A program made the translations under genes and the position numbers. DNA of 33,341 bases from NCBI RefSeq assembly GCF_001194135.2, contig NC_068981.1:50837480-50870820 (forward strand). The letters run 5' to 3'. The stretch is from Octopus bimaculoides (lineage: Eukaryota). The notes under the pieces were generated by a model. It made no database searches, was not told where the DNA came from, and saw only the letters and a list, made by a program, of their open reading frames with translations. Of the stretch, positions 8,984 to 33,207 are shown piece after piece (within the stretch, counting starts at the first letter, position 1; each line of letters starts with the position of its first letter).

Positions 8984-9691
8984 NNNNNNNNNNNNNNNNN
9001 NNNNNNNNNNNNNNNNNNNNNNNNNNNNNNNNNNNNNNNNNNNNNNNNNNNNNNNNNNNNNNNNNNNNNNNNNNNNNNNNNNNNNNNNNNNNNNNNNNNN
9101 NNNNNNNNNNNNNNNNNNNNNNNNNNNNNNNNNNNNNNNNNNNNNNNNNNNNNNNNNNNNNNNNNNNNNNNNNNNNNNNNNNNNNNNNNNNNNNNNNNNN
9201 NNNNNNNNNNNNNNNNNNNNNNNNNNNNNNNNNNNNNNNNNNNNNNNNNNNNNNNNNNNNNNNNNNNNNNNNNNNNNNNNNNNNNNNNNNNNNNNNNNNN
9301 NNNNNNNNNNNNNNNNNNNNNNNNNNNNNNNNNNNNNNNNNNNNNNNNNNNNNNNNNNNNNNNNNNNNNNNNNNNNNNNNNNNNNNNNNNNNNNNNNNNN
9401 NNNNNNNNNNNNNNNNNNNNNNNNNNNNNNNNNNNNNNNNNNNNNNNNNNNNNNNNNNNNNNNNNNNNNNNNNNNNNNNNNNNNNNNNNNNNNNNNNNNN
9501 NNNNNNNNNNNNNNNNNNNNNNNNNNNNNNNNNNNNNNNNNNNNNNNNNNNNNNNNNNNNNNNNNNNNNNNNNNNNNNNNNNNNNNNNNNNNNNNNNNNN
9601 NNNNNNNNNNNNNNNNNNNNNNNNNNNNNNNNNNTATATATATTATATATATACCTGTAAATATATTATGTGACAATTATTCGGTAGCCAT

Positions 9692-9759: not shown

Positions 9760-10322
9760 CAAAAAAATGCTATCAAAATGACCGTTAAACAAAGGGAAAT
9801 TATATGATTGACCGTTATTAAGACAAGAGTTATTAGAATGACCCCCAAGTAAGGGGAGGTTGTAAAGGTAACGGAGTGAAAATGTTCATAGCAATCGCGT
9901 AAGCGCGCATGTCCATGCATAAACATGCGCGCCGGCACACACACGTACATCTGCCTATATGTATATACTCATCCACCCTCACTTGAAACACACTCATACG
10001 CTCACCCACACATTCGCCAAAAATATATATACATACACATACATGCTCGCACACACACGCGCGCACAAAAAAGGTTCACACGCACGTCTATATACGCACA
10101 TGCACAAGAAAAAACAGGGCTAAAGGCAAAATACAGAAAAAATGTAAAAAAGTGTAAAAAAAATATGCAATAGCAATAAAAAGTAAATGAGTGAATATGT
10201 CTATGGCGAACGCGTATGCGCGCCTGTCAATATATACACATGCACGCACACCCACATACATGTGCCTATGTTGCTTATGTGCATATGCTCGACCACACGT
10301 GCTTGAAACATACACATGCGCA
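9760..10322 (-). mobile_element. GT-rich region upstream of the hammerhead, probable PLE 3' UTR/pLTR with internal duplication
   Basis: Leads directly into the minus-strand hammerhead. Composition resembles the GT-rich tail after the PLE at 15.6-16.0 kb. Degenerate direct repeat about 9880-10000 vs 10193-10320. Confidence 0.45.
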
Positions 10323-10324
10323 GT

Positions 10325-11426
10325 GGAAAATGACAGACACCAATCTCAAAGAATGCACTAGTATACCAATAAGAAACTTGATGGAAATGTTGACTTTCTG
10401 TGTAGAAACTATCTACTTCAGTATAGACACGGATATATATCGACATGAGGAGGGTTTAGCTATGGGTTTGCCATTATCACCGATAATAGTCAATATAATC
10501 ATGGAATACTTTGATAAGTTTGCTTTAGGATTAACACCACCAAAATAAACACTATGACTGCGATATGTTGATGACGCCTTCATACTCTGGCCCCACCAGG
10601 AAGATGTCCAAGTGCTGTTAGATTATGTGAACTCAATAAAGCCATCCATACAATTCACAATGGAAAAGGAAGAAAACAATCAGCTGGCATTCCTGGACGT
10701 ACTAATAACACGCACCGAGTATGAATTCAGGACATCCGTATACCTTTACTGGACGATAGCTCAACTTCCATTCCCACCATCCATGCAGTGTAAAGAGAGG
10801 GGATGCTCAGTGCCTAAAACATCGTGCAAAGAATATAAGAAACGATCGTGATACATACCACGAAGAAATGATCAAGCTCAATAACGATTTGTTAAGCAAC
10901 AACTGCCCCAAAAGTATACTATCCACTCCAATTATGAAGAAGAGAGAGGATGAGACCAATAAACTGTCCACAGTCTGTCTACTCTATGTGAAAGGCCTCT
11001 CCAGAAACGTAGAAAAGATATGCAGCCCAGGACAGTATACAACACTTCGAAAATATCTTCTTCGACTAAAAATAGAAGTCAATATGATCAAAGACTGCGT
11101 GTACTCCATCCCATGCAGCTGTGGTAGGTTATACAAAGGCGAACATGCCGCGCCTCAAAATAAAGGTAGACGAACATCGCAAACCTGTAACACGAGAAGA
11201 TATTGATAAATCGGGTATAGCTGATCATGTATGAAAAAATGGAGACCACTTCTCCCTGTGGGATGAAGTTAAAATAATAGACAGAGAACACCACTGGAAA
11301 ATACGAAATCTAAAAGAAGCAGCACATATGCTAGGACACAACAATCTCCTAAGCAGACCAGGTGCAGATATGAATAGCATATGGGAACCGGTATTAAGGA
11401 AGGATAGAAAAATATTAGATTTATAA
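10325..11426 (+). mobile_element. Penelope-like element (Poseidon-like), 5'-truncated decayed RT plus GIY-YIG
   Basis: EGLAMGLPLSPIIVNIIMEYF; LRYVDDAFILWPH; YVNSIKPSIQFTMEKEENNQLAFLDVLI; KDCVYSIPCSCGRLYKGE; SGIADHV; IIDREHHWKIRNLKEAAHM...PGADMNSIWEPVL. These are PLE RT (GLAMG/YVDD) and VY..YIG endonuclease motifs, with stops and frameshifts. Confidence 0.93.
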
Positions 11427-11456
11427 GCCCTAAAATTCACTCTATAAATTGCCAAC

Positions 11457-11529
11457 GGGCATATGGCGTAGTGGTTAAAAGTGCGGGCTACTAACCCCAA
11501 GATTCCGAGTTGGATTCTGAGCAATGACC
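11457..11529 (+). promoter_or_regulatory. tRNA-derived segment with Pol III A/B boxes directly after the PLE ORF
   Basis: A-box TGGCGTAGTGG (11464-11474). B-box-like GTTGGATTC (11509-11517), one change from GTTCGATTC. Anticodon-like arm ggg-ctactaa-ccc. Not an intact tRNA. Confidence 0.7.
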
Positions 11530-11616
11530 TGAACAACAACAACAATAATAATAATAATAATAACATCGAAAAATACCTTAGGAGTGAGAATCCAGGTTCA
11601 GGTTCGATATTTCCTC

Positions 11617-11659
11617 AACACACCTGAAGAGGGTAGTATATCAGCCAAAACGGTGTGTT
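11617..11659 (+). ncRNA. Decayed minimal hammerhead at the end of the PLE terminal region
   Basis: acac-CTGAAGA-gggtag tata tcagcc-AAAA-cggt-gtgt. CUGANGA is intact and stem I is ACAC/GTGT. GAAA is mutated to AAAA and stem II is only partly paired. Confidence 0.55.
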
Positions 11660-11711
11660 AACAACAAACAAGATGAGGAAAATATATCTGTCGAATGTAA
11701 ATAATGTAATG

Positions 11712-12204
11712 TGAAGTTTTGTATTAAAAAATGATTAACCGATGTTGATAAATTTGTTTGTTGGTTGATCAAAAGTTTTATCTCTTTTCTGGCTATTTTA
11801 GACTTTACACACACAAAATCATCAAAAGCCACAAACAACCAAAATCACTGAAAAAGATCCTCACAAAGGCAAAATTACTTTCCGAAACAACAGATGCGAA
11901 AGTAAACAAATGTGGACGACCAAATTGTGCAACATGCCTAAACATTCTAGAAGGTTCAGAATTCCTCTTCAAAGAGGGACACAAATTCAAAGTTAAATCT
12001 AACTTGTGCCTCAGAAAATCTTATTTATGTAATAAGATGTTCGGGCTGCCACGAGAACTAAATAGGGTCCACAGGATTATCGCTCAGACGTAGATGCACT
12101 CTGCACCGCCAGCAGATTGCACACCCAGAATACCGAATGATACCTTTTAGTGATCATATTGAAAAATGCGCAAAACAAATGCTACCACAATTTATAATCT
12201 TTCC
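11712..12204 (+). mobile_element. Penelope-like element (Neptune-like), linker plus GIY-YIG fragment, ending at a gap
   Basis: HKIIKSHKQPKSLKKILTKAK...KCGRPNCATCLNILEGSEF (Cys-rich linker of Neptune-type PLEs), then after a frameshift ASENLIYVIRCSGCHEN*IGSTGLSLRRRCTLHRQQI...SDHIEKC. Confidence 0.88.
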
Positions 12205-12581
12205 NNNNNNNNNNNNNNNNNNNNNNNNNNNNNNNNNNNNNNNNNNNNNNNNNNNNNNNNNNNNNNNNNNNNNNNNNNNNNNNNNNNNNNNNNNNNNNNN
12301 NNNNNNNNNNNNNNNNNNNNNNNNNNNNNNNNNNNNNNNNNNNNNNNNNNNNNNNNNNNNNNNNNNNNNNNNNNNNNNNNNNNNNNNNNNNNNNNNNNNN
12401 NNNNNNNNNNNNNNNNNNNNNNNNNNNNNNNNNNNNNNNNNNNNNNNNNNNNNNNNNNNNNNNNNNNNNNNNNNNNNNNNNNNNNNNNNNNNNNNNNNNN
12501 NNNNNNNNNNNNNNNNNNNNNNNNNNNNNNNNNNNNNNNNNNNNNNNNNNNNNNNNNNNNNNNNNNNNNNNNNNNNNNNNN

Positions 12582-13423: not shown

Positions 13424-15147
13424 NNNNNNNNNNNNNNNNNNNNNNNNNNNNNNNNNNNNNNNNNNNNNNNNNNNNNNNNNNNNNNNNNNNNNNNNNNNNN
13501 NNNNNNNNNNNNNNNNNNNNNNNNNNNNNNNNNNNNNNNNNNNNNNNNNNNNNNNNNNNNNNNNNNNNNNNNNNNNNNNNNNNNNNNNNNNNNNNNNNNN
13601 NNNNNNNNNNNNNNNNNNNNNNNNNNNNNNNNNNNNNNNNNNNNNNNNNNNNNNNNNNNNNNNNNNNNNNNNNNNNNNNNNNNNNNNNNNNNNNNNNNNN
13701 NNNNNNNNNNNNNNNNNNNNNNNNNNNNNNNNNNNNNNNNNNNNNNNNNNNNNNNNNNNNNNNNNNNNNNNNNNNNNNNNNNNNNNNNNNNNNNNNNNNN
13801 NNNNNNNNNNNNNNNNNNNNNNNNNNNNNNNNNNNNNNNNNNNNNNNNNNNNNNNNNNNNNNNNNNNNNNNNNNNNNNNNNNNNNNNNNNNNNNNNNNNN
13901 NNNNNNNNNNNNNNNNNNNNNNNNNNNNNNNNNNNNNNNNNNNNNNNNNNNNNNNNNNNNNNNNNNNNNNNNTGTGTGTATATATATATATGTATATACA
14001 TACGTACATATGTGCGTGTGTGTGTCTGTGTGTATTTGTTTATCAATGCCAACAACAGAAAGAGAGCTTCGAAAAAAAACTACCTATCTTGTCAGGAAAA
14101 TAAAAGAAAAGACTAGTACATATTTTCCAAAGTTACTTGTCTCAGTTTATTTTTATGACAAATTATTAAACTATGAGTTTCCATAATTTTTATTGTAGAA
14201 GATGCATGATTGCTATTTTAATATTAATAGACTCGACACGTGACGCAACCTTTGCCAGATTACTAATCTAATGTTTTTATTTGTTTTTGTTTTTTTTTAT
14301 ATATTTTTCATTTAGCATCACACTTTCCACGACGCACGAAATATTTAATATATTACTTTCTGGCATATCTGACCAGAAAAATATATTGATTCTATAATGA
14401 TTTGTCTACGTCCAATTTCCCATCTACTATAGAATATTTAATGTGTTTACATAGGCAAAAATAGTTTATTTTCTTTGGTCTTTTCAATAACGTGACACTG
14501 ATATTGTATCGATTACGAATTATTTCTTGAAATAAAATATTTTCTAGTCAACTGGAGGTAAATCAATAGGGAATTGTCTACACAGCCTTTCTTTCCTTTT
14601 TTCCTATTAATGCTCCATATAATAAACCACTTCGTATTCCTCTGCTATTGAAATACTAACTTCTTCACATACACTTCTCTATCTATATTTACAGAATTCT
14701 GAATGAAAGGAAATCTATTGAAAACAGATGAACCAACGGAAATAATAGGGATGCAATTGCCTCTCCGCTATGCTGTTCTTGCTTTGTTTTCTGATACAAA
14801 AGTTGTTCAACATAACGTAATCCAGAAAGTGATGAAGATGATAATGTCTTTTCAAGGACTTATATGCTTTCTGTTTGATCTGCACTGCTGTATGCTGTAA
14901 CACAGCTGTATGTGATCTACGTTGAAGATTTAGTGTTTATAGATACATGAGTAAAACGAGTATTTCAGTCATCTGATAGACTAAGGTTGGTCAGTAATAT
15001 ATTACATTCGCTACCATAGATAATTATTGCAAAACTGACAGAAACCTGTATTTTTTACGATGTTCGTTTTTAATAATATATTTTTCTGAATTAATGCATA
15101 TATACTACTCACGTGTTTTGTCATTCAATTCAGTTACAACCAAATGG

Positions 15148-16338: not shown

Positions 16339-17037
16339 NNNNNNNNNNNNNNNNNNNNNNNNNNNNNNNNNNNNNNNNNNNNNNNNNNNNNNNNNNNNNN
16401 NNNNNNNNNNNNNNNNNNNNNNNNNNNNNNNNNNNNNNNNNNNNNNNNNNNNNNNNNNNNNNNNNNNNNNNNNNNNNNNNNNNNNNNNNNNNNTATATAT
16501 AATGGAACTGTGATTATGTATATCAGAAAAAAATATATGAAATAATATGTTGGAGTTTTATGGTTTTTATAGTTATTTATGTTATATAATATTATTTTAT
16601 TTTATATATTACATTCATAGTATTTAATGTAATATAAATAAATTATTGGATTGTCAATAATATATCTCTATATTTAATTTATCTTTATATATATCTATAT
16701 ATATAAAATTGATTTGTATCTGTGTATGTCTGTGTCTGTATATAAATGTATATATGTATGTGTGTGTGTGTGTGTGTGTGTATGCGTGTGTGTATGAGTA
16801 TGTGTGCGCGCGCGCGTGTGTGTGTATGTTTGTGTGTCTACGTTGCCAAGAATGATACGCATGACCAACTATCAAAGAACTACAAAGCCTTTAGAGCGCT
16901 TTTCATTCAAATGCTATCATGATCTTCCTATTTATTATTTTTTTTATCCTTTACCTACCACTATTCGAATCATACCAAACATCCTGCTTCATTATTTGAT
17001 TTGTTAACTACTATAAACGCACGAAACATACAGATGA

Positions 17038-18184
17038 GTTCAATGCAGTAAATGTCGTGTTTCGATCTGCCTTCGATGTGCCACAAGCTTTCAAAAGATC
17101 CCAGGTCAAAAAAAAAAGGACATCGTACTTCTATGATGGATAAACTCTGAGAAACGGTCCAGCTACCAAACTGGTCATTTCAGTGTCTGACTTCTGTGTC
17201 CTTTTCTACCATTAATGCTGAACAGCAACAATAAGAACCGACAAACGTGTCCTCCTCTGCCATTGCTGCTGAACAGCAACTAAAACCGACTACGTCTCCC
17301 AATACCAATTCTGTTGATGAAGAACAAGAACAAAAACTAAAGCCGCCCTTGTCTTCCTCCCCTGTCACTCTTCCACAACAGCAACAAAAATCGACCATTC
17401 CTGTTGAAGAACATCAACAAAACTAAAGCCACCCGTGACTTCCTCCCCTGTCATTCTTCAACAGCAACAACAACAAAAATGTACATTGCAGCCGAAGAAC
17501 ATCAGCAGGAACAAAATCCAACTATGCCCTCTTCTCCTGACACTTCTCAATTCCAACAAAATTCGACCAACAGTACAGAAGTTGCAGAAATTCGAGAAAT
17601 GTTTTCTACTTTAAGCCTAGAAATAGCAGGAATCACAGCCAGCATCTGTAAAAAATGTCACAATGAAGAATCGTATCGCAATGCCTTGCTCAACAATTTA
17701 CCCGTAGCTCTTACTGAACCTAGCCACGTCGAGGAAGCCACTGAATCAACCACTCATGAGGTAATTGTCATCGGAATATCGGAAGATATAGTTGATCTAC
17801 ATGCATTTACTGGCAACAAATCTGGCACTTCCTCCAAAAAGTGTTTTCTGCCTTGGTCGACCAGGATCCAAACCCGGATTGATTAGGCTGTCCTTTTCGA
17901 ACTCCACTGAGGCGCGGGCATACAATCTAGCCGCTGATACGGCTCGGCGTGAAAACAGAATTACCTTCCAGACACGCCCTGGCCTACCACCTGATGTACG
18001 CGCAAAGCTAAGAACTGTAGCTTCCATAAATCGCAACTCTGTGCCACAGCAAATATTTAGCCTACGCGACGATGAGCAAATATGGAAATTCGTCAAGTCT
18101 GGTGAGTCATGGATAAGGAATATCAGTTGGTCTGAGCATACTGCACACACAATAACCGGCAATACAAAGATCATGGGAAACTAA
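17038..18184 (+). mobile_element. CR1-type LINE ORF1, decayed: PHD-like finger, Q/E/P repeats and C-terminal domain
   Basis: VQCSKCRVSICLRCA...PNWSFQCLT(S); repeated I.AE(E)QQ..KPT.SSSP units; VIVIGISED; LGRPGSKPGLIRLSF...TRPGLPPDVR. Directly precedes the APE domain. Confidence 0.65.
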
Positions 18185-18224
18185 ACAAGAACAATAAGCC
18201 ATCCCCTGTATATCATCATCATCT

Positions 18225-20250
18225 GAAATCTAGATACAAACTGTTGTCCTTAAATGCCCGTAGTTTATGCAACAAGGTACATCTTGTTGACTCTTACGTC
18301 AAACGTATCGACCCAGATTTCATCACAGTTACGGACACATGGGCACATTCCGCACTCTGTGATGGGTTTTTCAGCATAGCCGGCTAGAACCTGTTCCGCA
18401 AAGACTGCATTAATCACCGTGGTGGGTGTGTGATGGTCTACATATGTTCAAACCTAACGGGAATTCCTTGTGATGATTTGAACCAATCTCAACAGGATGT
18501 ATTTTTCTGCAATATACACATGACCATATCAACACTTCTACTTGGAGTTGTTTACCGCCACCAAAATTATCATCAAGACACACACCTTTTTGATATCCTC
18601 AGAGTTGCTGCCATCAAAACAGCCACTTCTGTTTATATTGTAGGGGAATTCAATTTCCCTGAGATTGAATGGGAGGCCTTCCGTTGGCCGCAAAGTGTAG
18701 ACGATTTCCTTGATCTAGTACTGAATTCAAATTGGTCCCAAGTCGTTACCTCGCCCATAAGGGGTAACAACACTTCGGATCTGCTATTTACCACTTCTCC
18801 TGAAACAATTATTAGTGGCAATACTGAGGAACCTTTAGGTGACTCTGATCATTCCATGATCATAGCCGACTTGTCTCTGATTGTTTGTAACAAAAACCAC
18901 AACCATCTTCAAGCTGCCCCCTTTAATTGGAATAAAGCAGACTGGAACCCTTATTGTACCGAACTGCGACGCCCAAACTGGCTCGAATTTTATGTCTATG
19001 GAGATGTGAACACTATACTTCAGAACATTCTGAATTCAATATGGACAGCATGTGCAGCATCGGTAGCACGCAAGCACAAAATCACCCAATAGTGCAATGT
19101 GGGAGAATGCAGCAGTCCGATTTGCCAGGAAAGAACGCCGTAATGCTGAACAGGAATACAAAATGCACAAATCAGAGATCAACAGGCAAAAGCACAATAG
19201 ATCATCCAACCATCTCAAGCAGGTGACTTAAAAAGGCAGTGCTTGAATTCAGACAGTGCATAGCATCTAACCCTGACAGCAAAGTGTTCTAGAAGTATGT
19301 ACATTCAAAGCAGAGACCTCACTCTCTAGTTGGTCTCATTCGCAATCCCCCCACAGGCCAGATTATTGACAATCCCAAAGAATGTGCAGAATTTATTGCT
19401 GGATGCTATGCAGGCATCTTTACTATCGAAAATCAAAATGTTCTCTCTCCATCACCTCTGACATCGGACACTATAACTACAATGAAATTTACACCAGCAA
19501 TGATACAACGCCACCTTAAGAATAAATATAACTGTGCCTCTCCTGGTCTCAATGGTGTTACATACCTACTTCTCAAACGTGGTGGGTACTTTCATCTGAA
19601 CCAACATTCACTATTCTTTCACTTCTGTTTTGACAATGGTGTTACTCCAGAGCAGTGGAAAACTGCCAGTATTATCCCTCTGTTCAAGAAAACTGACCGC
19701 ACATCGCCTGTCAACTATCGCCCCGTCAGTCTTACTAGTTGCATCGCCAAACTGATGGAATCCTGTGTCAGAGAAACCCTCTGGAACATCTGGAAGTCTC
19801 ACAGCCTCATCCAGCCGTCACAATTTGGATTTATTCCTAACTCCAGCTACTGTAATCAACTCATCCAGTTTCTTGAGGTCATAATCCGAATCACTGATGG
19901 CGGATCCTGGGTGGATGTTGTTTACCTGGACTTTGCTAAGGCTTTTAATTCAGTGCCACACAAAAGACTTATGATGAAACTCTCTGCAATGGATGTAAGA
20001 GATGATCTCTATAACTGGTTGAAGTCCGTCATTATCGGCCGAAAAGCGGTTGTCACAGTTCTAGGACAGCACATTTCACCCTATGAGATGACATCTGGTG
20101 TACCACATGGATCTGTTCTTGGACCCCTTTTATTTGTTGCGTATATTAATGACATAGATGTCAACTTAAAGAATGCCACAGTGCTAAAATATGCAGAAGA
20201 CATCAAGCTGTACCTCGAAATAAAGAGGACAGATTTTGGCCTTAAGCATA
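18225..20250 (+). mobile_element. CR1-type LINE ORF2 (APE endonuclease plus RT), decayed and 3'-truncated
   Basis: LSLNARSLCNK; VTDTW; GEFNFPEIEW; RGNNTSDL; LGDSDHSMI; WKTASIIPLFKKTDRTSPVNYRPVSLTSCIAKLME; QFGF; YLDFAKAFNSVPH; SGVPHGSVLGPLLFVAYIND; KYAEDIKL. Homology stops just after the YADD-equivalent motif. Confidence 0.95.
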
Positions 20251-20441
20251 CGTAGTATATCATAAAGAGTTAAATACTTAAACACAACAATCTCACTTAA
20301 CTTGCATTTATGCAATTATCCTTGCATTATATACATATACATATATTTAAGAAATAATCGAGATTCCGTAGAATTAGGTACTTAAATTGAGGCACCAAAG
20401 CAGTTCGGTAAAGTCCTCATAGCTTGTAGTTAGGTGAATAA

Positions 20442-22073: not shown

Positions 22074-22100
22074 NNNNNNNNNNTATATATGTATATGAAT

Positions 22101-23564: not shown

Positions 23565-23771
23565 TTAGCACAAAGCCGACACGTTAAGAATAGGATTCAA
23601 AACGATTATATCGACCCTTGTGCTCAACTGTTACTTATTTTATTATTTTAATGACCCCAGAAGGGTAAAACGCAAAATCGACCCCGGTGTAATTTGAACT
23701 CAGAAGGAAAAAGCGGATGAAATTCCGCTCATGTTTACCCGGAGTGGTAGCGATTCTGCAATCTAACCGCC
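23565..23771 (-). mobile_element. tRNA-derived SINE (octopod OR/OK-type; family name uncertain)
   Basis: Minus strand GGCGGTTAGATTGCAGAATCGCTAC (A-box-like)...TTCTGAGTTCAAATT (B-box-like)...GGGTCGATTTTGCGTTTTACCCTTCTGGGGTC...AAGTAACAGTTGAGCACAAGGGTCGATATAATCG. It resembles the abundant cephalopod SINE as I recall it. Confidence 0.75.
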
Positions 23772-24553: not shown

Positions 24554-25344
24554 NNNNNNNNNNNNNNNNNNNNNNNNNNNNNNNNNNNNNNNNNNNNNNN
24601 NNNNNNNNNNNNNNNNNNNNNNNNNNNNNNNNNNNNNNNNNNNNNNNNNNNNNNNNNNNNNNNNNNNNNNNNNNNNNNNNNNNNNNNNNNNNNNNNNNNN
24701 NNNNNNNNNNNNNNNNNNNNNNNNNNNNNNNNNNNNNNNNNNNNNNNNNNNNNNNNNNNNNNNNNNNNNNNNNNNNNNNNNNNNNNNNNNNNNNNNNNNN
24801 NNNNNNNNNNNNNNNNNNNNNNNNNNNNNNNNNNNNNNNNNNNNNNNNNNNNNNNNNNNNNNNNNNNNNNNNNNNNNNNNNNNNNNNNNNNNNNNNNNNN
24901 NNNNNNNNNNNNNNNNNNNNNNNNNNNNNNNNNNNNNNNNNNNNNNNNNNNNNNNNNNNNNNNNNNNNNNNNNNNNNNNNNNNNNNNNNNNNNNNNNNNN
25001 NNNNNNNNNNNNNNNNNNNNNNNNNNNNNNNNNNNNNNNNNNNNNNNNNNNNNNNNNNNNNNNNNNNNNNNNNNNNNNNNNNNNNNNNNNNNNNNNNNNN
25101 NNNNNNNNNNNNNNNNNNNNNNNNNNNNNNNNNNNNNNNNNNNNNNNNNNNNNNNNNNNNNNNNNNNNNNNNNNNNNNNNNNNNNNNNNNNNNNNNNNNN
25201 NNNNNNNNNNNNNNNNNNNNNNNNNNNNNNNNNNNNNNNNNNNNNNNNNNNNNNNNNNNNNNNNNNNNNNNNNNNNNNNNNNNNNNNNTATATATATATA
25301 TATATTTATATATACGTGCTCTGCACACATCTGTTATATATGTT

Positions 25345-25729
25345 TGTGTATTCTTTTATTTGTTTCAGTCATTTGACTGCGGCCATGCTGGATCACCGCC
25401 TTTAGTCGAACAAATCGACCCCAGGACTTACTCTTTGTAAGCCTAGTACTTATTCTATCGGTCACTTTTGCTGAACTGCTAAGTTACGGGAACATATACA
25501 CAATAACATCGGTTCTCAAGCGATTGTGGGGGTACAAACACAGACACACAAACACACACACACACGCACATATATATGCATACATATACGACATACTTCT
25601 TTCAGTTTCCATCTACCAAATGCACTCACAAGGCTTTGGTCGGTCCGAGGCTACAGTAGAAGACACTTGCCCAAGGTGCCACGCAGTGGGACTAAACTCG
25701 GAACCATGTGGTTGGGAAGCAAGCTTCTT
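25345..25729 (-). mobile_element. tRNA-derived SINE body lacking its first ~20 nt (3' part of the split SINE)
   Basis: The reverse complement aligns along its length with the intact copy at 25925-26580 (CAACCACATGGTTCC.GTT.AGTCCCACTGCGTGG...AATAAGTACTAGG...CTAAAGGCGGTG.TCCAGCATGGCC.CAGTCAAA.GACTGAAACAA). It begins at AAGAAGCTTGCTTCC (25715-25729), preceded by a Tx1-type tail instead of the head. Confidence 0.92.
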
Positions 25730-26307
25730 TATTTCATAAATTGGCTATGGAAGCCGTACACAGATGGGACAAACAAGGACAGACAAACATAAAGGGTGAA
25801 GAAGTTGCTTATTACGGATGAAAATGTTTCGTGTGATAAAATATAAATATCATACTGTTAAAAATTATATCTTTTTTTTTTCATTTTAAAAAGTTCAAAA
25901 ATTACTTTAAAAATTTCAATATTAGGCGTAGGAGTGGCTGTGTGGTAACTAGCTTGCTTACCAACCACATGGTTCCGGGTTCAGTCCCACTGCGTGGCAT
26001 CTGGAGCAAGTGTTTTCTACTATAGTCTCGGCTCGGGCTGACCAAAGCCTTGTGAGTGGATTTGTTAGACGGAAACTGAAAGAAGCCCGTCGTATATATA
26101 TATACATANNNNNNNNNNNNNNNNNNNNNNNNNNNNNNNNNNNNNNNNNNNNNNNNNNNNNNNNNNNNNNNNNNNNNNNNNNNNNNNNNNNNNNNNNNNN
26201 NNNNNNNNNNNNNNNNNNNNNNNNNNNNNNNNNNNNNNNNNNNNNNNNNNNNNNNNNNNNNNNNNNNNNNNNNNNNNNNNNNNNNNNNNNNNNNNNNNNN
26301 NNNNNNN

Positions 26308-26363
<56 letters not shown>

Positions 26364-29300
26364 CTGTGTGTCTGTGTGTCTGTGTTTGTCCCCCCAGCAT
26401 CACTTGACAACCGATGCTGGTGTGTTTACATCCCTGTAACTTAGTGGTTCGGCAAAACAGACCGATAGAATAAGTACTAGGCGTCCAAAGAATAAGTCCT
26501 GGGGTCGATTTGCTCGACTAAAGGCGGTGCTCCAGCATGGCCACAGTCAAAAGACTGAAACAAGTAAAAGAGTAAAAGAGTATTACTTGATGATCATTGC
26601 AAATTTTGCAATGTGTGACTAGGAAAGGCACCCAACCGCTAGGTTCGAACCTTACCTGGTTCCAGTCACTCGCAGCTTGTTCACAACTTGCTTCGATCTT
26701 TTCGCGAACATATCCTGTGACAGGTATCTCTTCTCCAGCCAGGTCTTGCTATTGAGGTGGTAACTAACCAACCCCTGGCCGGAGACGAAGGTACCTGTCA
26801 TTACAGCTCTTACACGCGTCTTCCATACTGTTTCTTTCAGTATGGCTGCTACGCATACAAAACAAGCCTTCCTTTCCCTGTTTAGGGAAGGAGGTGGCAC
26901 ATACTTGATAACAGACTCAGGCGATAGCTGTACTGTTCTCACCGTTGACAACAGTTGCTCAACAAAAGCTCGACAAAATCCCGATAATTCCGGACACTCC
27001 ATGAAGGAGTGCAGTTTCTCTGTCCCGCCTGTACCACGGGCAAGAGCCAATATATGCAGAAGTGGTGACAGGGGATATCTCTCTCAATCAAAGATCTGTT
27101 TATGGTATCGCTGCCATGCTGGATCTCTACCGTGCGGGACCACTCGCAACATTAATTCCCTCGCGGCTGAATGCACGTACTTTAGCCCAAACCCTGCATC
27201 CCTCATGTTTAGCTTTGGGGTGACGGTCCAAGGTTGTTCTCGTTGCCAAAATTTGGGAGGCAGAGCCCAATCTCAACGCCTCTTCTTAAGCCTTAAGTAG
27301 GTTTCATTCTATCCTGGCCTTATCAAAACTTAGTTGACGGCTAAATCTAATAGACTCATACGTATGACTCTTTTTATGGCCAAACCACCACCGGTTACTA
27401 ACCACGGTGCCGGTTAATGCCATTTTCACTAACTCCTTTATCCGTTTACGGTATGCTTCACTGGCCCAAATAGACTTGTTCAGTGTTCAGTAGCCGGATC
27501 CCTGTCTATAGGCACTATCTATGTTCAGCCTACACTAAACTACTTTATGGTCTGTGTAGTCTACTTGAACAAACTGTGGACAGCTAAAGCTAGACTTATC
27601 TCTAATCCTTATAACTATCCTGTCTAAGTAAGACTTGAGCTTTCCGTCGCCATTCATCCAGGTCCACACTGGGGCGCTCGGGTGTAACGATCTGCCAGCT
27701 GAAAACGCTTAAGCGAATCGATGAGGCGTTAGTTAACACTCCTACCAGTCGAGCCACACCTATCAAGACGTGCATCTAGGATAGCACTGCAGTCTCCTAG
27801 TACAACTAACACTTGGACGTCACGAGAAATTTCTCTAGGCACCGATAGAAATCTGTTTGCTGCCTTCTTGCACAAGGCGCGTAAATACCGAACAGCTTGA
27901 AGGCCTTGTTGCTGTATGTCACGTCAAGGACGACCAGCCCACCTTCGGGTTCCACAAAGACTGTACTTCTCTGCAGAGCCAAGACTTTTCGGACCAGGTC
28001 TAGTACACCTCCTCGACCTCCGGTCTGGCCAGGAGACATGATTTTCTCATAGCCATTCAGGAGAGCCGAGAAGGTTTATAGCCTATCCAGCTTGGTCTCT
28101 ATTGCAACGATCACATGTATATCATTTGAACGGAGGTCGTCGAGGAAACATGCTTGCTTGCACTTCGAACTCAGACCACGCACATTTAAACAACCAAGGT
28201 TAAGAGTTGACATTTTAAGGAAAAGTAAATGTTCTACTTATTTTTCATTGGCGATGTGGGGGCCGACCTCACGTCTCGTGAGGGGCCCTCTTTTCTCCTA
28301 TTCCCTGAGGTATTTTGGAACGTCTTTTAACCTAGAGATGGCTTCTGGATGCTTCATCTTCAGCTGTTTACATGATATTTCGCCTATACAGGCACATTGT
28401 CTAGGACAGTCCTTGTGGTTTGGAAATAATAATGTAGTGTCGTGTGGCGCTATCACATCATTTGTGTATTTTCCTTTGGGTAGAACTCAGCCAAGATTCG
28501 TCTTTCGCCTGTTTTTTCTGGGTCGGTTGGGCAGGATTTTTTTTTTATAATTGAGTTGCTGTATTTTCCGTTTTGTGGTGTATGTGGACGAGGATTATGT
28601 CAATGCTCTTTTGGTCGGGCCTCGAACAAGAGTGTACTCCCCCTCGACCGCCTCCATGGTGTCATCTGGGGTAGTTGCACTGTCAGGTGCTGTCGACGTT
28701 GAGGGGGTGGGTATTTTTGTTGTTGTCGGGACTAGTGTGTGCGCGAGTTGGGGTTTTTGGAATACTTATTTGGGGACTTGTATGGGCACCACAGTTAGGG
28801 GAGTAGGTGTCTTTGCTAGTGTAGGCGTTGGTGTGTGTGTGGGGGGCAGCTGTTTGGGTTTGTTAGGTGTCAGGTGCATGTGTATCCACAGATGTTTGGG
28901 CCTTTATATTCTCTTCCTTTTTCCTGCGTCGCAGTCAACCCTTATGTGGCCTTTTCGGCCACATTTAAACCATCTGGGGTTTTTGCCTAAAACATGAATT
29001 TTGAGGGCCATGTCCTCGCCCACGAGGGAATCGCTTCTATGTCTTCTGGTGCCGCTTGAATGACGGCCACAATGCTCTGGCCGAGCTAAATTTGGGAGGC
29101 TGAGCTGTTACTTGTAGAATATTAATTTTATCTTCCCTCTTGAACAACAGGGGGGCCATCACCCACGCTGTATCAGACTCCGGCGGTACCTTTGTCGCAC
29201 TGACACGGGACGTGCGTTGCCCCATATTGGTTGGCAGAAGCACCACTTTGTCTTCAACGGGCTGACAGAGTAACGCCATCTCTGTTGTTCTGAATCTGGC

Positions 29301-30286
29301 TTCTATTCTGCGAAATTTCCTTCCTCTTGTTATATAGATAATATATTTCCATATGAGTGCCACGCATTTTTCAATTTTATTCTGTTCTATGTTTCATTCT
29401 TTTTTCTTCTAGGCAGAACGTTTTGAATATAATTGTATTTTTCATCTCTTCAGTTGTGTTGGTGGGAGGGGATATTTTTACTTTGCCCTCCTCCTCTGTC
29501 ACACGTTTAATAATTTCCTGGAAGTCCCCCAGTGGGATTTCCAGACTTTCCATTTGTGCGGCGGCGACTGCCGCAAAACCTTTGGTGACTTGTCTTGGAG
29601 GTTGATTAGCCTCCAAAGCCACATAATCTTAGAGAGAGCATTTTTCTCTTATTATATCCACTGACATTTCGGTCCAGATAAATTAGCAGGAAACACACGA
29701 AATCCCACCCCTGTCAAGGGGAGGGGCGTAGCTCAATGAAGAGCCAAAAACAGCTGAAAAACCAGTTCTTTCTTTCCGAAGGAAAAATTAAAAGATTCCG
29801 TTCTTTTTTTTTTTTTCTGTTCAAAAAAATTACTTCCTCTGAAGAGAAACAACAGCTTAAATAAAGTTCCTAAATACATTTTGCAAAAAAAAACATTTTT
29901 TTGCAAAAGAAAATTGTAGGTTTCCCCCTTTTTTTTCCACTGTTCAAAAAATAAATTCCTCGCAATAGGAACAACAGTTTAAATCCCACCCCCGTTTGGA
30001 GGTGGGCGCAGTTAAACAATGTCTACGTAGGGTAAATTTTAAAAATGCACTCCGTTGAAGAATCCAATCGAATAAACAATCGCCAAATGGCTACAGAAAT
30101 TTTACTATTCCCCGAAATAACGGGAAATAAAAGAGTCCAGCACAGCCTCCAAACAGGCAACAGTCCACACTAACAATTTCCAGCAATAAATTTCAACTAC
30201 AGTTTACAATAAATAACAGAGTTTCAACAATAAACATGACAACACACAGATTGCCAAAAACAGAAACACGACCGAAGTCTTCAACC
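25730..30286 (-). mobile_element. L1/Tx1-clade non-LTR element 1: 5' UTR, ORF1, APE and C-terminal CCHC; RT deleted; 3' UTR interrupted by a SINE
   Basis: ORF1 starts about 29622 (MALEANQPP...FAAVAAA) and has the knuckle (W)FKCGRKGHIRVDC near 28960. ORF2 starts at 28213 (MSTLNLGCLNVRGL...FLDDLR...ETKL; GIYAP; SYLDRI; YTDHK; SGY*TLN). C-terminal CPW...ETAL/HSFMECP at about 27050-26990. The tail GCCAATTTATGAAATA is at 25730-25745. Confidence 0.85.
25925..26580 (+). mobile_element. Full-length tRNA-derived SINE of the same family, with internal microsatellite and gap
   Basis: GGCGTAGGAGTGGCTGTGTGGT (A box)...CCGGGTTCAGTCCC (B box), central TA/TG tract, tail gagtaaaagagtaaaagag. TATTA flanks both sides (25920-25924 and 26581-26585), a candidate target-site duplication. 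Confidence 0.93.
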
Positions 30287-30301
30287 GGAAGCAAGCTTCT
30301 T

Positions 30302-31868
30302 TATTTTATGAAATTGGCAATGAAGGTCTTACATAGAGGGGATAGCACAAGGTGGGGACAAAAGAACAAAACAAATGAAAAGAATGAATTAATATAATGA
30401 GAGATGAAATGAAACTGTTCGGGCACACCTACGAGTGAACCAGTTAATAGAACCTATTTTTTTAAACTAGTTTATAACGATTTTTTGTTTCTTTTTAGCG
30501 ACAACTAATTACCATGAAATTCTTACATAGAGGGGACAGCACAAGGTGGGTACAAAAAGAAAAAAAAACAAAATGAATGGGTCTGCCATTACACAACAAA
30601 TGTACTCGGGCACCCCCTTCACTCCTGATATATTCACTTTTATAGCATTGTCCCACAAGTCTATTTTGTTATACAGTTCTTCGTTTTCTCCATTATACAA
30701 TATAATATACTTTTTCAAGGGCGAGGGTGGGGAAATGTGGGGCTCCCGAGTGCTTGTGTTTCTCTTCATGTCAGGGAGGGCTGATGTCTGTAGAGGGTGA
30801 TTGGAGTAAAGTGGGTGTGACTTTTTTTCTCTTCTTTTTCTCCCAGCTGTTTACCATTCATTGTCCATCTCCTCTTCGACGCTGGTACTAGTCTTTGTCT
30901 TCGGTGCCGTTTCACTCTCCTTTTCTACAACCTCCACGGGTAGTGGAGCACCAGCCACTTTCTCATTCTCTTGTCTCTCTTTAGCCTTCACGGGTGGTGG
31001 AGGACAATTTGCTTTAATGTGGCCCAAAGGGCCACATTAATAGCACCGCGGAATCCTCCCTTCCACTCTGACTCAGTGTTGCCTCTCCGACCGTGATTGT
31101 CTCTACCATATTTTCGATATTTTCCACTGCAACGTGTACACCCATAACGAGGCTTTGTCCTTTCCAGTTCCTGTGGGGTGTTCTGGTGGCCTGGAGGAAC
31201 ACCACTTTCCCTTCCGTGCATAGCAGTATGGCAGCTACAAGCCAGGCTACATCCACTTCTGGAGGTATATCTTCTACTCTAAATCTAGAAGCCCGCCTCC
31301 CAAGGTATACCGGTGGAAGCACCACTGCATCGGTTCCCAACGGTGTTGCTGAGTACAGCCTAGCAGTATCCGCCTCCCGAGACTGCACTTCCACTCTTCC
31401 AAATATTCTACCTCTGGCAAGGTAGGTAATTTCCTGCCAAATTGGTTTAAGTGCCTTTTTTATTTGAGCCGTTGACATGACTTCAATCTTCCTGGCTGCC
31501 ACCGAGTATGCTCTGTAAAATTATGGTTTTCTCATTGTTCTCTTTTAACCCTTCTTTGGTGGGGAAACACCTTCATTTCGTCCCCCTCACGTCTTTGATT
31601 CTTTCCTTTGTCGCCTCTGCGTAATTTTTCGTCTCCCTTGCTTCATCACTCCTCTTCAAATACGCCATCATTTCTTCCTCAGACGACACAAAGTCTGAAG
31701 AAGGATAGTTCACAAACTATGAGGAAAAATGATTGCAATTTTTGCAACTCGTCACCCGATGCCCATCCATTACACAAGAGGGAAAATGTCACAGTTACGA
31801 AAGCAAAAAAAAAAAAAAATGCGTGTGTTACACGCAAAACCAACAATTCAACTGACAAACGCAATACC
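30302..31868 (-). mobile_element. L1/Tx1-clade element 2: ORF1-only derivative, with a duplicated or third 3' tail
   Basis: ORF 31014-31502 is homologous to element-1 ORF1 (ITYLARGRIFGRVEVQ vs IIYITRGRKFRRIEAR; VVLPPVYLGRRASRFRV..IPPEVDVAW vs VVLLPTNMGQRTSRVSATKVPPESDTAW). Knuckle CY*CGPLGHIKANC. ORF1 end ISGVKGVPEY runs into the 3' UTR with no ORF2. Confidence 0.85.
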
Positions 31869-31900
31869 GGAGGCAAGCTTCTTATCACACAGTCACACCT
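31869..31900 (-). mobile_element. SINE head (5' part of the split SINE) including the target sequence
   Basis: Minus strand AGGTGTGACTGTGTGAT-AAGAAGCTTGCCTCC vs the intact head AGGAGTGGCTGTGTGGT-AACTAGCTTGCTTAC at 25930-25961. SINE homology stops here and element 2 starts. Confidence 0.8.
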
Positions 31901-31929
31901 ATATATATATTTATATATATGATATATTC

Positions 31930-32008
31930 CCTTTTTTTCTATTTCTTTAACCTGTCATTTGACAGCGGCCATGCAGGAGTATCGCCTTTAGTCGAACAAA
32001 TCGACCCA
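31930..32008 (-). mobile_element. 3' fragment of another copy of the same SINE
   Basis: gtcatttgacagcggccatgcaggagtatcgcctttagtcgaacaaatcgaccc matches 25368-25421. Confidence 0.85.
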
Positions 32009-33207
32009 TGACAAAATACCTCTAAGCAGTTTGGCCGGCGTGCTATATCGGTTCTACTAGCATACTATATTTCTAGGGAAAACGTTAAAGATATTTCACT
32101 GAAGTAGATAAATTAGGTAAAACATGATTGATTAAAATATGAATATTAGATAGACAGCTTAGCACTTGTGTCATGATTTTTAATCAACTCTTTTCTTAAG
32201 TATAATCAATGCCAATAATATCCCTGATGAGATTGAGTCGCCGGATCATAATGAAACAAATTCTTGAGGTGTTGATACCAGTGACTGTGCTTAAATTTCA
32301 TCTTATTGTCGTGGTTTGTAATATGCGTCAGTAGTTGTATCTGTTAACAATAATAAGATTTATATGAATATGTGAATGTCTGATTCTTTGTGCACCAGTG
32401 ACCAAAACGGCGTGGTATGCTTTTCTTGCATTACAAAATTAGTTATAGTCTTTCTTTTTATTCAAAGATGAAATATTATCATTCTTGAGTGTAACATTGA
32501 TTTGATACAAATACAAAGGGATAACTGTTAAAAACAAATATTGTACCAAGTAAAAAATATATTTAAATTTAGAACAAGGATTTAGTGTCCATTACATGTA
32601 CTGATATTTTAAACGTAATTTCTAGTTCATATCAGCATAAATTATTTCTTTTCGCATTAGTAATTGGCAATTCTTCATCGACATGTTTTTGAGGTCGATA
32701 TCCCTCCCCGAAACCTGTTAGCCTTGTAACCAATTTGAAACCAACATTTTCCTTAGAAGATATCACTACTCCCTGCCGAGTCTGAATTTTCCCGAATATT
32801 TCCCAAAAATATATCCTGAGTGTTCTTTGAGATACAACTCTAGTATTTATAGTCAAACAGATCAAAATATTTTTAGTCTTCTTCCAACTAAATATAATGA
32901 AAAAAGATTATTCCAAACAATGTGTCATTAACATCTCTGATGAAAAGTAAAAGAATAAGAAATATGTTTCATTATTATATAGCTGAGTATAAATTAAATT
33001 CATAAAGGTTATTTGTTTCTAATAAAAAATACATAAATACGTTTAACAACAGGAAAATCATAACTTTATATTTAATTTCAATCCTTTGGCACTTTTTATT
33101 TTAACCATAGGTGTCAAACTAAAAAAATAGTGAATAGTAATTATTTACCAAAATGGACTTTCATACTTAATATATTGATTATTTTTTTCCTCACCAACGG
33201 AAAAGCA

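Follow-up and report, generated by a model that had tools for sequence, protein, structure and literature searches.

A short interspersed element (SINE) is split by two long interspersed elements (LINEs), designated E1 and E2, in a 33,341-nt stretch of the Octopus bimaculoides genome (contig NC_068981.1), which is called the window here and whose numbering is used for all positions given without a locus name. The two LINEs lie in tandem, and each is bounded by the same 15-bp sequence. Read along the minus strand, the SINE head is followed by a first 15-mer, E2, a second 15-mer, E1, a third 15-mer, and the remaining part of the SINE, which belongs to a family named SINE-A. These elements seem to have been inserted one after the other at a sequence-selective hot spot following an A-box-like motif of the SINE head, toward which there would be a real but non-exclusive preference and which would be regenerated by the target-site duplication. 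We assign this reading a probability of about 45%.

The 15-mer (SEQ1 hereafter refers to AAGAAGCTTGCTTCC) is exact in the two downstream copies and carries one mismatch (GCCTCC) in the upstream copy, and all three copies are on the minus strand. Three occurrences were observed against 0.05 expected by chance, and this number was reached in none of 100 shuffles. Both E1 and E2 start with GGT directly after a 15-mer and end with GCCAATTT(C)AT(G/A)AAATA directly before one. A reading made earlier from the sequence only had proposed a tandem insertion at one 15-bp site; this layout was confirmed by the three 15-mers at the exact element boundaries, and both elements, being bounded by SEQ1, indeed occupy the same nucleotide with the same 15-bp duplication, as independent insertions at one nucleotide. 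The single T-to-C change in the upstream 15-mer is compatible with either insertion order of E1 and E2.

The octopus DNA used for comparison consisted of O. bimaculoides loci L001, L002, L033, and L034 (72.9 kb without gaps), which were reached through protein relatives of the apurinic/apyrimidinic endonuclease-like (APE) domain of E1, and six short Logan contigs (L029-L032, L036, and L037). An uninterrupted SINE-A at 25925 in the window is 85% identical to the split copy and has a contiguous head and body, and the same contiguity was seen in five SINE-A copies from O. bimaculoides loci. In the split copy, an A-box-like motif, TGACTGTGTGA (31895-31885), finishes 1 nt before the 15-mer, and a B-box-like motif, AGTTTAGTCCC (25698-25688), begins 16 nt after it. 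The corresponding motifs of the uninterrupted copy, in direct reading, are TGGCTGTGTGG (25935-25945) and GGTTCAGTCCC (25978-25988). The sequence-only reading was therefore right that head and body are normally contiguous and, as far as box-like motifs are concerned, that the insertion site lies between the A and B boxes of RNA polymerase III (Pol III). Its further suggestion that tRNA sequences are targeted gained no support: ARAGORN called no tRNA in the heads of SINE-A and of the second SINE family described below (SINE-B), and Rfam gave none even at E<=10, so that neither head is scored as tRNA. Just upstream of the split head, the 3' part of another SINE-A was found at 31931-32040 on the minus strand; only an A/T-rich microsatellite separates the two, which form a SINE-SINE tandem.

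E1 has a 5' untranslated region (UTR) and a decayed open reading frame 1 (ORF1; about 29622-28930) with the CCHC knuckle CGRKGHIRVDC (28963-28931). Stop codons and frameshifts interrupt its APE endonuclease (28213 to about 27500), and E1 further contains a C-terminal C..C/H..C region (27083-26655) as well as a 3'UTR split by a nested SINE. Its reverse transcriptase (RT) is deleted near 27084. The copy in L002 shows 77% nucleotide identity to E1 up to window position ~27084; past this point, the L002 copy runs into the RT (KSPGLDG ... YADD), whereas E1 skips to the C-terminal region. E2 consists of a 5'UTR, decayed ORF1 remnants (about 31671-30854) with the CCHC knuckle CGPLGHIKANC (31036-31004), and a 3'UTR, and lacks ORF2. 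No blastn similarity was detected between E1 and E2 beyond the tail, the final 20 nt of which are nearly identical, and their ORF1 products are homologous at 33% identity (E=1e-25). Judged from these sequences, E1 and E2 are two diverged families, both non-autonomous, as the sequence-only reading had held for two diverged subfamilies. Since they belong to different families, neither can have arisen by duplication of the other, and each must have been inserted separately at the same phosphodiester bond. E2 also contains an internal partial tail copy (30521-30557, minus strand), 35/37 identical to the terminal one and ~190 bp before the end of E2.

The lineage of these elements was examined through P0180, an O. 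bimaculoides protein (LOC106873154) that is 78% identical to the E1 APE and matches PF03372 at E=9e-11; the stitched E1 ORF2 gave a weak Exo_endo_phos match. Among solved structures, the human L1 endonuclease is nearest to the APE of P0180, and human L1 ORF2p is nearest to the RT of the same copy. In addition, the APE is located at the N-terminus of ORF2 and a CCHC zinc knuckle is present in ORF1, both features of the L1/Tx1 group. Because of the PF03372 match and the proximity of both APE and RT to human L1, the E1/E2 lineage is a real LINE placed in the L1/Tx1 group, in agreement with the earlier view of the inserts as APE-type LINEs. Octopus surveys give L1-Tx1 as the L1-like component (PMC13282606, PMC8967140), and it is the only such group in PMC13282606, which hints indirectly at the Tx1 clade.

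Table 1. Features of the split SINE-A and of the elements inserted in it (window positions)
Feature	Positions	Strand	Remark
SINE-A head, 5' part of the split copy, ending TGACTGTGTGAT	31884..31902	-	Includes the A-box-like motif; aligns with the head of the copy at 25925
Target-site duplication copy 1, AAGAAGCTTGCCTCC, one mismatch	31869..31883	-	
E2, non-autonomous LINE, 1567 bp; starts GGTATTGCG, ends GCCAATTTCATAAAATA	30302..31868	-	
Conserved 3' tail of E2, ending GCCAATTTCATAAAATA	30302..30375	-	
Target-site duplication copy 2, exact	30287..30301	-	
E1, non-autonomous LINE; starts GGTTGAAGAC, ends GCCAATTTATGAAATA	25730..30286	-	
Nested, later, full-length SINE-A copy in the E1 3'UTR, TATTA on both sides	25925..26580	+	Microsatellite holds gap 26109-26307
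Conserved 3' tail of E1, ending GCCAATTTATGAAATA; 30-nt block (27/30) in common with the SINE-B subfamily tail	25730..25810	-	
Target-site duplication copy 3, exact	25715..25729	-	
Remaining part of the split SINE-A, beginning CAACCACATGGTTCC / CAACCACATGG; B-box-like motif, microsatellite, 3' domain	25345..25714	-	

The window contains seven assembly gaps (8984-9634, 12205-12581, 13424-13972, 16339-16493, 22074-22083, 24554-25288, and 26109-26307). All seven are flanked by (TA)n or (TG)n repeats, the same microsatellite type as inside SINE-A, and probably correspond to SINE microsatellites that could not be spanned by short reads. Their number, and the position of junction 3 (E1 tail / 15-mer / SINE body) on an 820-bp contig (25289-26108) between two of them, would fit an assembly or scaffolding artefact in which the tandem is not one locus. 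This explanation is nevertheless very improbable, because the sequence from 26308 onwards, which contains junctions 1 and 2, is free of gaps and a 15-bp repeat is too short for a false join. Moreover, gap 26109-26307 falls inside the SINE-A copy nested in the E1 3'UTR, touches no junction, and is crossed by no reading frame. To its left are the SINE head and body and to its right a (TA)n(TG)n microsatellite and the tail, in the correct order and orientation, so that both sides form one collinear SINE with TATTA flanks. Even with an erroneous scaffold join, junction 3 would represent an independent locus with the same tail/15-mer/SINE junction, that is, a further example.

The tail of E1 is shared with a SINE. 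SINE-B, a second SINE family found in L034, ends with ...CCCTTTGTCTGTCCTTCTTTGTCCCCTCTATGTTTAGCCCCTTGTGGGCAACGAAAAAATAA, and comparison of this end with the E1 tail revealed a block of 27 matches in 30 nt, with a score reached in 0/1000 shuffles; the similarity of the E2 tail was weaker (score reached in 6/1000 shuffles). Profile matches between the LINE tail and the SINE-B tail span about 55-70 nt. The 3' end of SINE-B is thus homologous to that of the LINE, as seen with the E1 tail. RNAalifold predicted no conserved RNA structure in the tails. A 4-bp hairpin noticed by eye (GGCT..AGCC in E1 and GCCC..GGGC in SINE-B) was not counted, being offset by one alignment column.

An insertion homologous in position to those of the window was found in L034, where a near full-length SINE-B (10432-10204, minus strand) lies inside the head of another SINE-B. 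The junction reads ...GAGTTGGCA / GAATCATTAACATGC / copy / GAATCATTAGCATGC / CAGGG..., with a 15-bp duplication, GAATCATTA[A/G]CATGC, and the rebuilt target is collinear with seven uninterrupted SINE-B heads. The insertion site reads TGGCA|GAATC...GC|C, and its homologue in SINE-A reads TGGTA|AGAAGC...CC|C. This event is independent of those in the window and was found on a locus fetched for another reason; it therefore counts in favor of a hot spot in SINE heads. The target SINE-B of L034 (10050-10203 and 10448-10480, minus strand) differs in its tail (..CTGGCCTTGTGTCAAAATGTGAAACCATTAT) and in its duplication, C[C/T]ACACTAA; tails of several types are thus found among the SINE-B subfamilies, which probably also have several LINE partners.

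The weight of the L034 event depends on how much of the site is read. In the 72.9-kb sample, there were 1067 AGAA, 517 AGAAK, and 43 YA(A)GAAKC sites, and the SINE-head sites (13 intact and 1 occupied) amounted to ~2.7% of those with AGAAK. Were any AGAAK site sufficient, the L034 copy would have had a chance of about 0.03 of landing in a SINE head. Under a 7-8-nt motif, on the other hand, SINE heads would account for roughly a quarter of all sites, and if such a motif is read, the preference for SINEs would follow from the motif plus its abundance.

Several observations weigh against a hot spot in SINE heads. A 40-nt truncated tail in L001 (20503-20464, minus strand) lies in DNA other than a SINE head, with the duplication (AG)AATGTACTTCTTTTC. 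In L031 (1-68), a tail is separated from the 5' region of a related LINE by a spacer of about 10-12 nt, AGAAAATTTC (~10 nt), forming a second head-to-tail tandem, in non-SINE sequence and without the SINE 15-mer. Hence, only one of the three related-tail junctions is in a SINE head and two are outside, and the common ground of L001 and L031 is limited to AGAA at the start of a ~10-17 bp duplication. The last ~35 nt of the LINE tails in the window also differ from those of the SINE-B tails, and for this reason the SINE-B copies, and the elements at the three related-tail junctions in general, may depend on a sister LINE that has a preference of its own. Furthermore, no further E1 or E2 copy with a readable junction was found in the loci and contigs sampled. 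The sample is very small, and the striking look of the window was the reason for its selection, which limits the weight that it can bear. The specificity for the SINE site claimed by the sequence-only reading is thus supported in so far as a related tail occupies the homologous SINE-B head site, and falls short in that two of the three related-tail junctions lie elsewhere; the unrelated flanks with a generic motif that were named at the time as speaking against it are present in part, namely at L001 and L031, where only AGAA is shared.

These junctions bear on the explanation that the elements require only a short L1-like motif, TTCTT|A, with the second element drawn to the A-rich tail/duplication junction of the first or to its homologous tail, and with the SINE being incidental. 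With a stagger fixed at about 15 bp, the same duplication would then arise automatically. Every target site begins with (A)GAA, following an A, and duplications measured on both sides are 15-17 bp long; the tails of E1 and E2, being nearly identical in their final 20 nt, would allow one to guide the other, and the L031 tandem at a non-SINE spacer and the choice of the window as unusual also fit. However, in L034, which was not selected for this feature, the insertion again occupies a SINE head, at the homologous position and at the above chance under AGAAK, and the first insertion in the window was likewise in a SINE head. This explanation is therefore possible but less probable than a preference for the SINE-head site.

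At the other extreme, the APE could recognize an extended SINE-head sequence in such a strict manner, as Tx1L recognizes its site in Tx1D, that nearly all E1 and E2 copies would be at one position. Families with 33% ORF1 identity use an identical site and duplication, and target-specific lineages typically conserve their specificity in this way; the use of one bond by two different families is the pattern of target-selective lineages. Tx1-clade families often target repeats, other transposons included (PMC4494074). The L002 copy, which is the only E1-like copy with long flanks and retains its RT, has both ends in assembly gaps, and beyond its 3' gap (1.7 kb) lies the 3' half of a SINE-A in the same relative orientation as in the window. 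This arrangement is weak support for SINE targeting, because gaps usually fall in SINE microsatellites and the match in orientation has a 50% chance. Given also the related-tail elements outside SINE heads in L001 and L031 and the single E1 and E2 junctions among the sampled loci, strict specificity is unlikely. A 5'-truncated SINE-B (9419-9548, minus strand) in inverse orientation abuts the 5'-truncated E1-like copy of L002 and begins no more than 1-2 nt from where the SINE-B target site ends on its 3' side (..GC|CGGGC). The abutment may be a coincidence or a nested insertion.

In the preferred explanation, a non-exclusive preference, two internally deleted, trans-mobilized copies of two related L1/Tx1-type families would have been inserted successively, by target-primed reverse transcription, into the head of a Pol III-type SINE at one and the same bond. 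The bottom strand would be nicked at 5'-..CTTCTT|A (top strand A|AGAAG), the 3' end of the RNA (..AUAAAGAA) would pair with the TTCTT primer, and a second nick would be made ~15 bp downstream. SINE heads would offer the motif with an extended match, TGGYA(A)GAAKC..TT..GC, right after the A-box-like motif in very many copies, and would thus become a preferred target. Since the 15-bp duplication recreates the site, repeated insertion would result in a head-to-tail tandem. The two events of the window together with that of L034 may reflect a preference beyond a short motif. As a broader proposal, which we regard as doubtful, a cephalopod L1/Tx1 lineage and a tail-sharing SINE subfamily would home to one site in Pol III SINE heads, just behind the A-box-like motif, and perhaps to its counterpart in tRNA genes, thereby splitting the internal promoters of other SINEs and using the most abundant octopus repeat as a safe landing pad. 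Such a SINE-targeting pair of LINE and SINE was described in none of the papers searched.

In human L1, the endonuclease consensus is TTTT|AA and duplications are 7-20 bp. The octopus elements are similar to human L1 in their nearest solved APE and RT structures, a short T-rich nick motif, duplications of ~15 bp, and a primer that would pair with an A-rich RNA 3' end; in contrast to it, E1 and E2 have a conserved specific tail and no poly(A), their ORF1 carries a CCHC knuckle, and two families reuse one site. Tx1L, inserted in Tx1D of Xenopus laevis, is likewise an APE-type LINE with a CCHC ORF1 that occupies one position in another mobile element with a long, precise duplication. The target is a DNA transposon in that case, whereas it is a SINE head here, and the specificity seen here comes from one locus.

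Known targets of the Tx1 clade include Tx1D for Tx1L and Mariner-N4_AMi for Tx1-Mar and SINEU, and other members are found in LTR elements, U2, U5, 5S, satellites, and microsatellites (PMC4494074). In crocodilians, the Tx1-Mar LINEs and SINEU, short retroposons that this LINE group apparently mobilizes, both prefer one position in an abundant transposon (Kojima 2015, PMC4494074), to which the octopus LINE tails in common with a SINE-B subfamily and the one SINE-B copy in the homologous site are a parallel. However, 77/88 SINEU-3 copies are flanked by the target (PMC4494074), compared with three events in SINE heads and two elsewhere here. Dewa, Keno, and Mutsu are given as Tx1-clade elements in tRNA arrays, U2 snRNA, and 5S rRNA genes, respectively (Kojima and Fujiwara 2004, as cited in PMC4494074). 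These elements likewise use small Pol II/III RNA genes or their derivatives as abundant, harmless targets, but the targets here are SINEs that neither ARAGORN nor Rfam scores as tRNA. The eel pair UnaL2/UnaSINE1 is described as a stringent-type LINE-SINE pair with a common 3' tail (Kajikawa and Okada 2002, as cited in PMC4494074). Similarly, the SINE-B subfamily carries a LINE 3' tail (the E1 block and the profile span given above); unlike the eel pair, the last ~35 nt differ, no conserved stem-loop is predicted, and mobilization of SINE-B by the E1 and E2 families is putative.

No paper linking Tx1 with SINE targets or describing a SINE-head target was found in the literature searched (Repbase and Dfam being outside this search), nor were the SINE and tail sequences found in print there. 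Because target-specific Tx1 elements in transposons are already known, a SINE head would at most extend a known mechanism to another target. Should the preference be real, SINE heads would join the DNA transposons, LTR elements, snRNA, 5S, and tRNA genes, and microsatellites as targets of Tx1-type elements, and one retroposon lineage would inactivate another by splitting its Pol III promoter. The APE endonuclease would then have a defined, abundant target for studies of specificity; in Octopus vulgaris, about 11% of the genome consists of SINEs (PMC13282606). Should a short motif suffice, the locus would be an ordinary cluster of nested and tandem repeats.

Searches for further copies gave little more. 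The Logan contigs contain mostly internal E1-like fragments, and a tail junction is present only in L031. Neither SINE-A nor SINE-B is present in loci L035 and L038 of ERZ22157276, which come from another species. A protein search with the stitched E1 ORF2 gave no match, an exact look-up of 11 ORFs from the window in the collection gave none, and a representative protein search with an 89-aa piece of the APE retrieved 59 short ORF fragments of decayed relatives. In collections without octopus DNA, the tail/15-mer junction had 0 matches in a metagenome scan, the SINE head plus 15-mer had 26 random bacterial-type matches, and the SINE core had 0 matches in genome and viral contig scans.

In L029 (1123-1224; Logan SRR11869384), an E1-like APE passes directly into a SINE-B-like 3' domain and tail (..AACTAGTTACGTACTGGAGGTCGATCTAATAGACTAGCCCAGCTACCTTGTCTATCTTTGTTTGTC), which represents either an internally deleted LINE with a SINE-B 3' domain in its 3'UTR or a chimera. 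The window itself has one diverged SINE-B-like copy (23643-23759, minus strand), which is 72% identical to the L034 copy and is without the LINE-type tail. Another LINE with fairly long frames is located at 17404-20255 on the plus strand, with Exo_endo_phos_2 at 18430-19089 and RVT_1 at 19482-20252; its O. bimaculoides relatives LOC106872658, LOC128249179, and LOC106874498 are 69-73% identical. Penelope-type-like fragments were also observed on the plus strand at 2453-2812 and 10216-12093, with a weak GIY-YIG match at 2453-2809, a weak RVT_1 match at 10216-10545, and a similar CGRPNCATCLNILEGSEF motif at 11758-12093.

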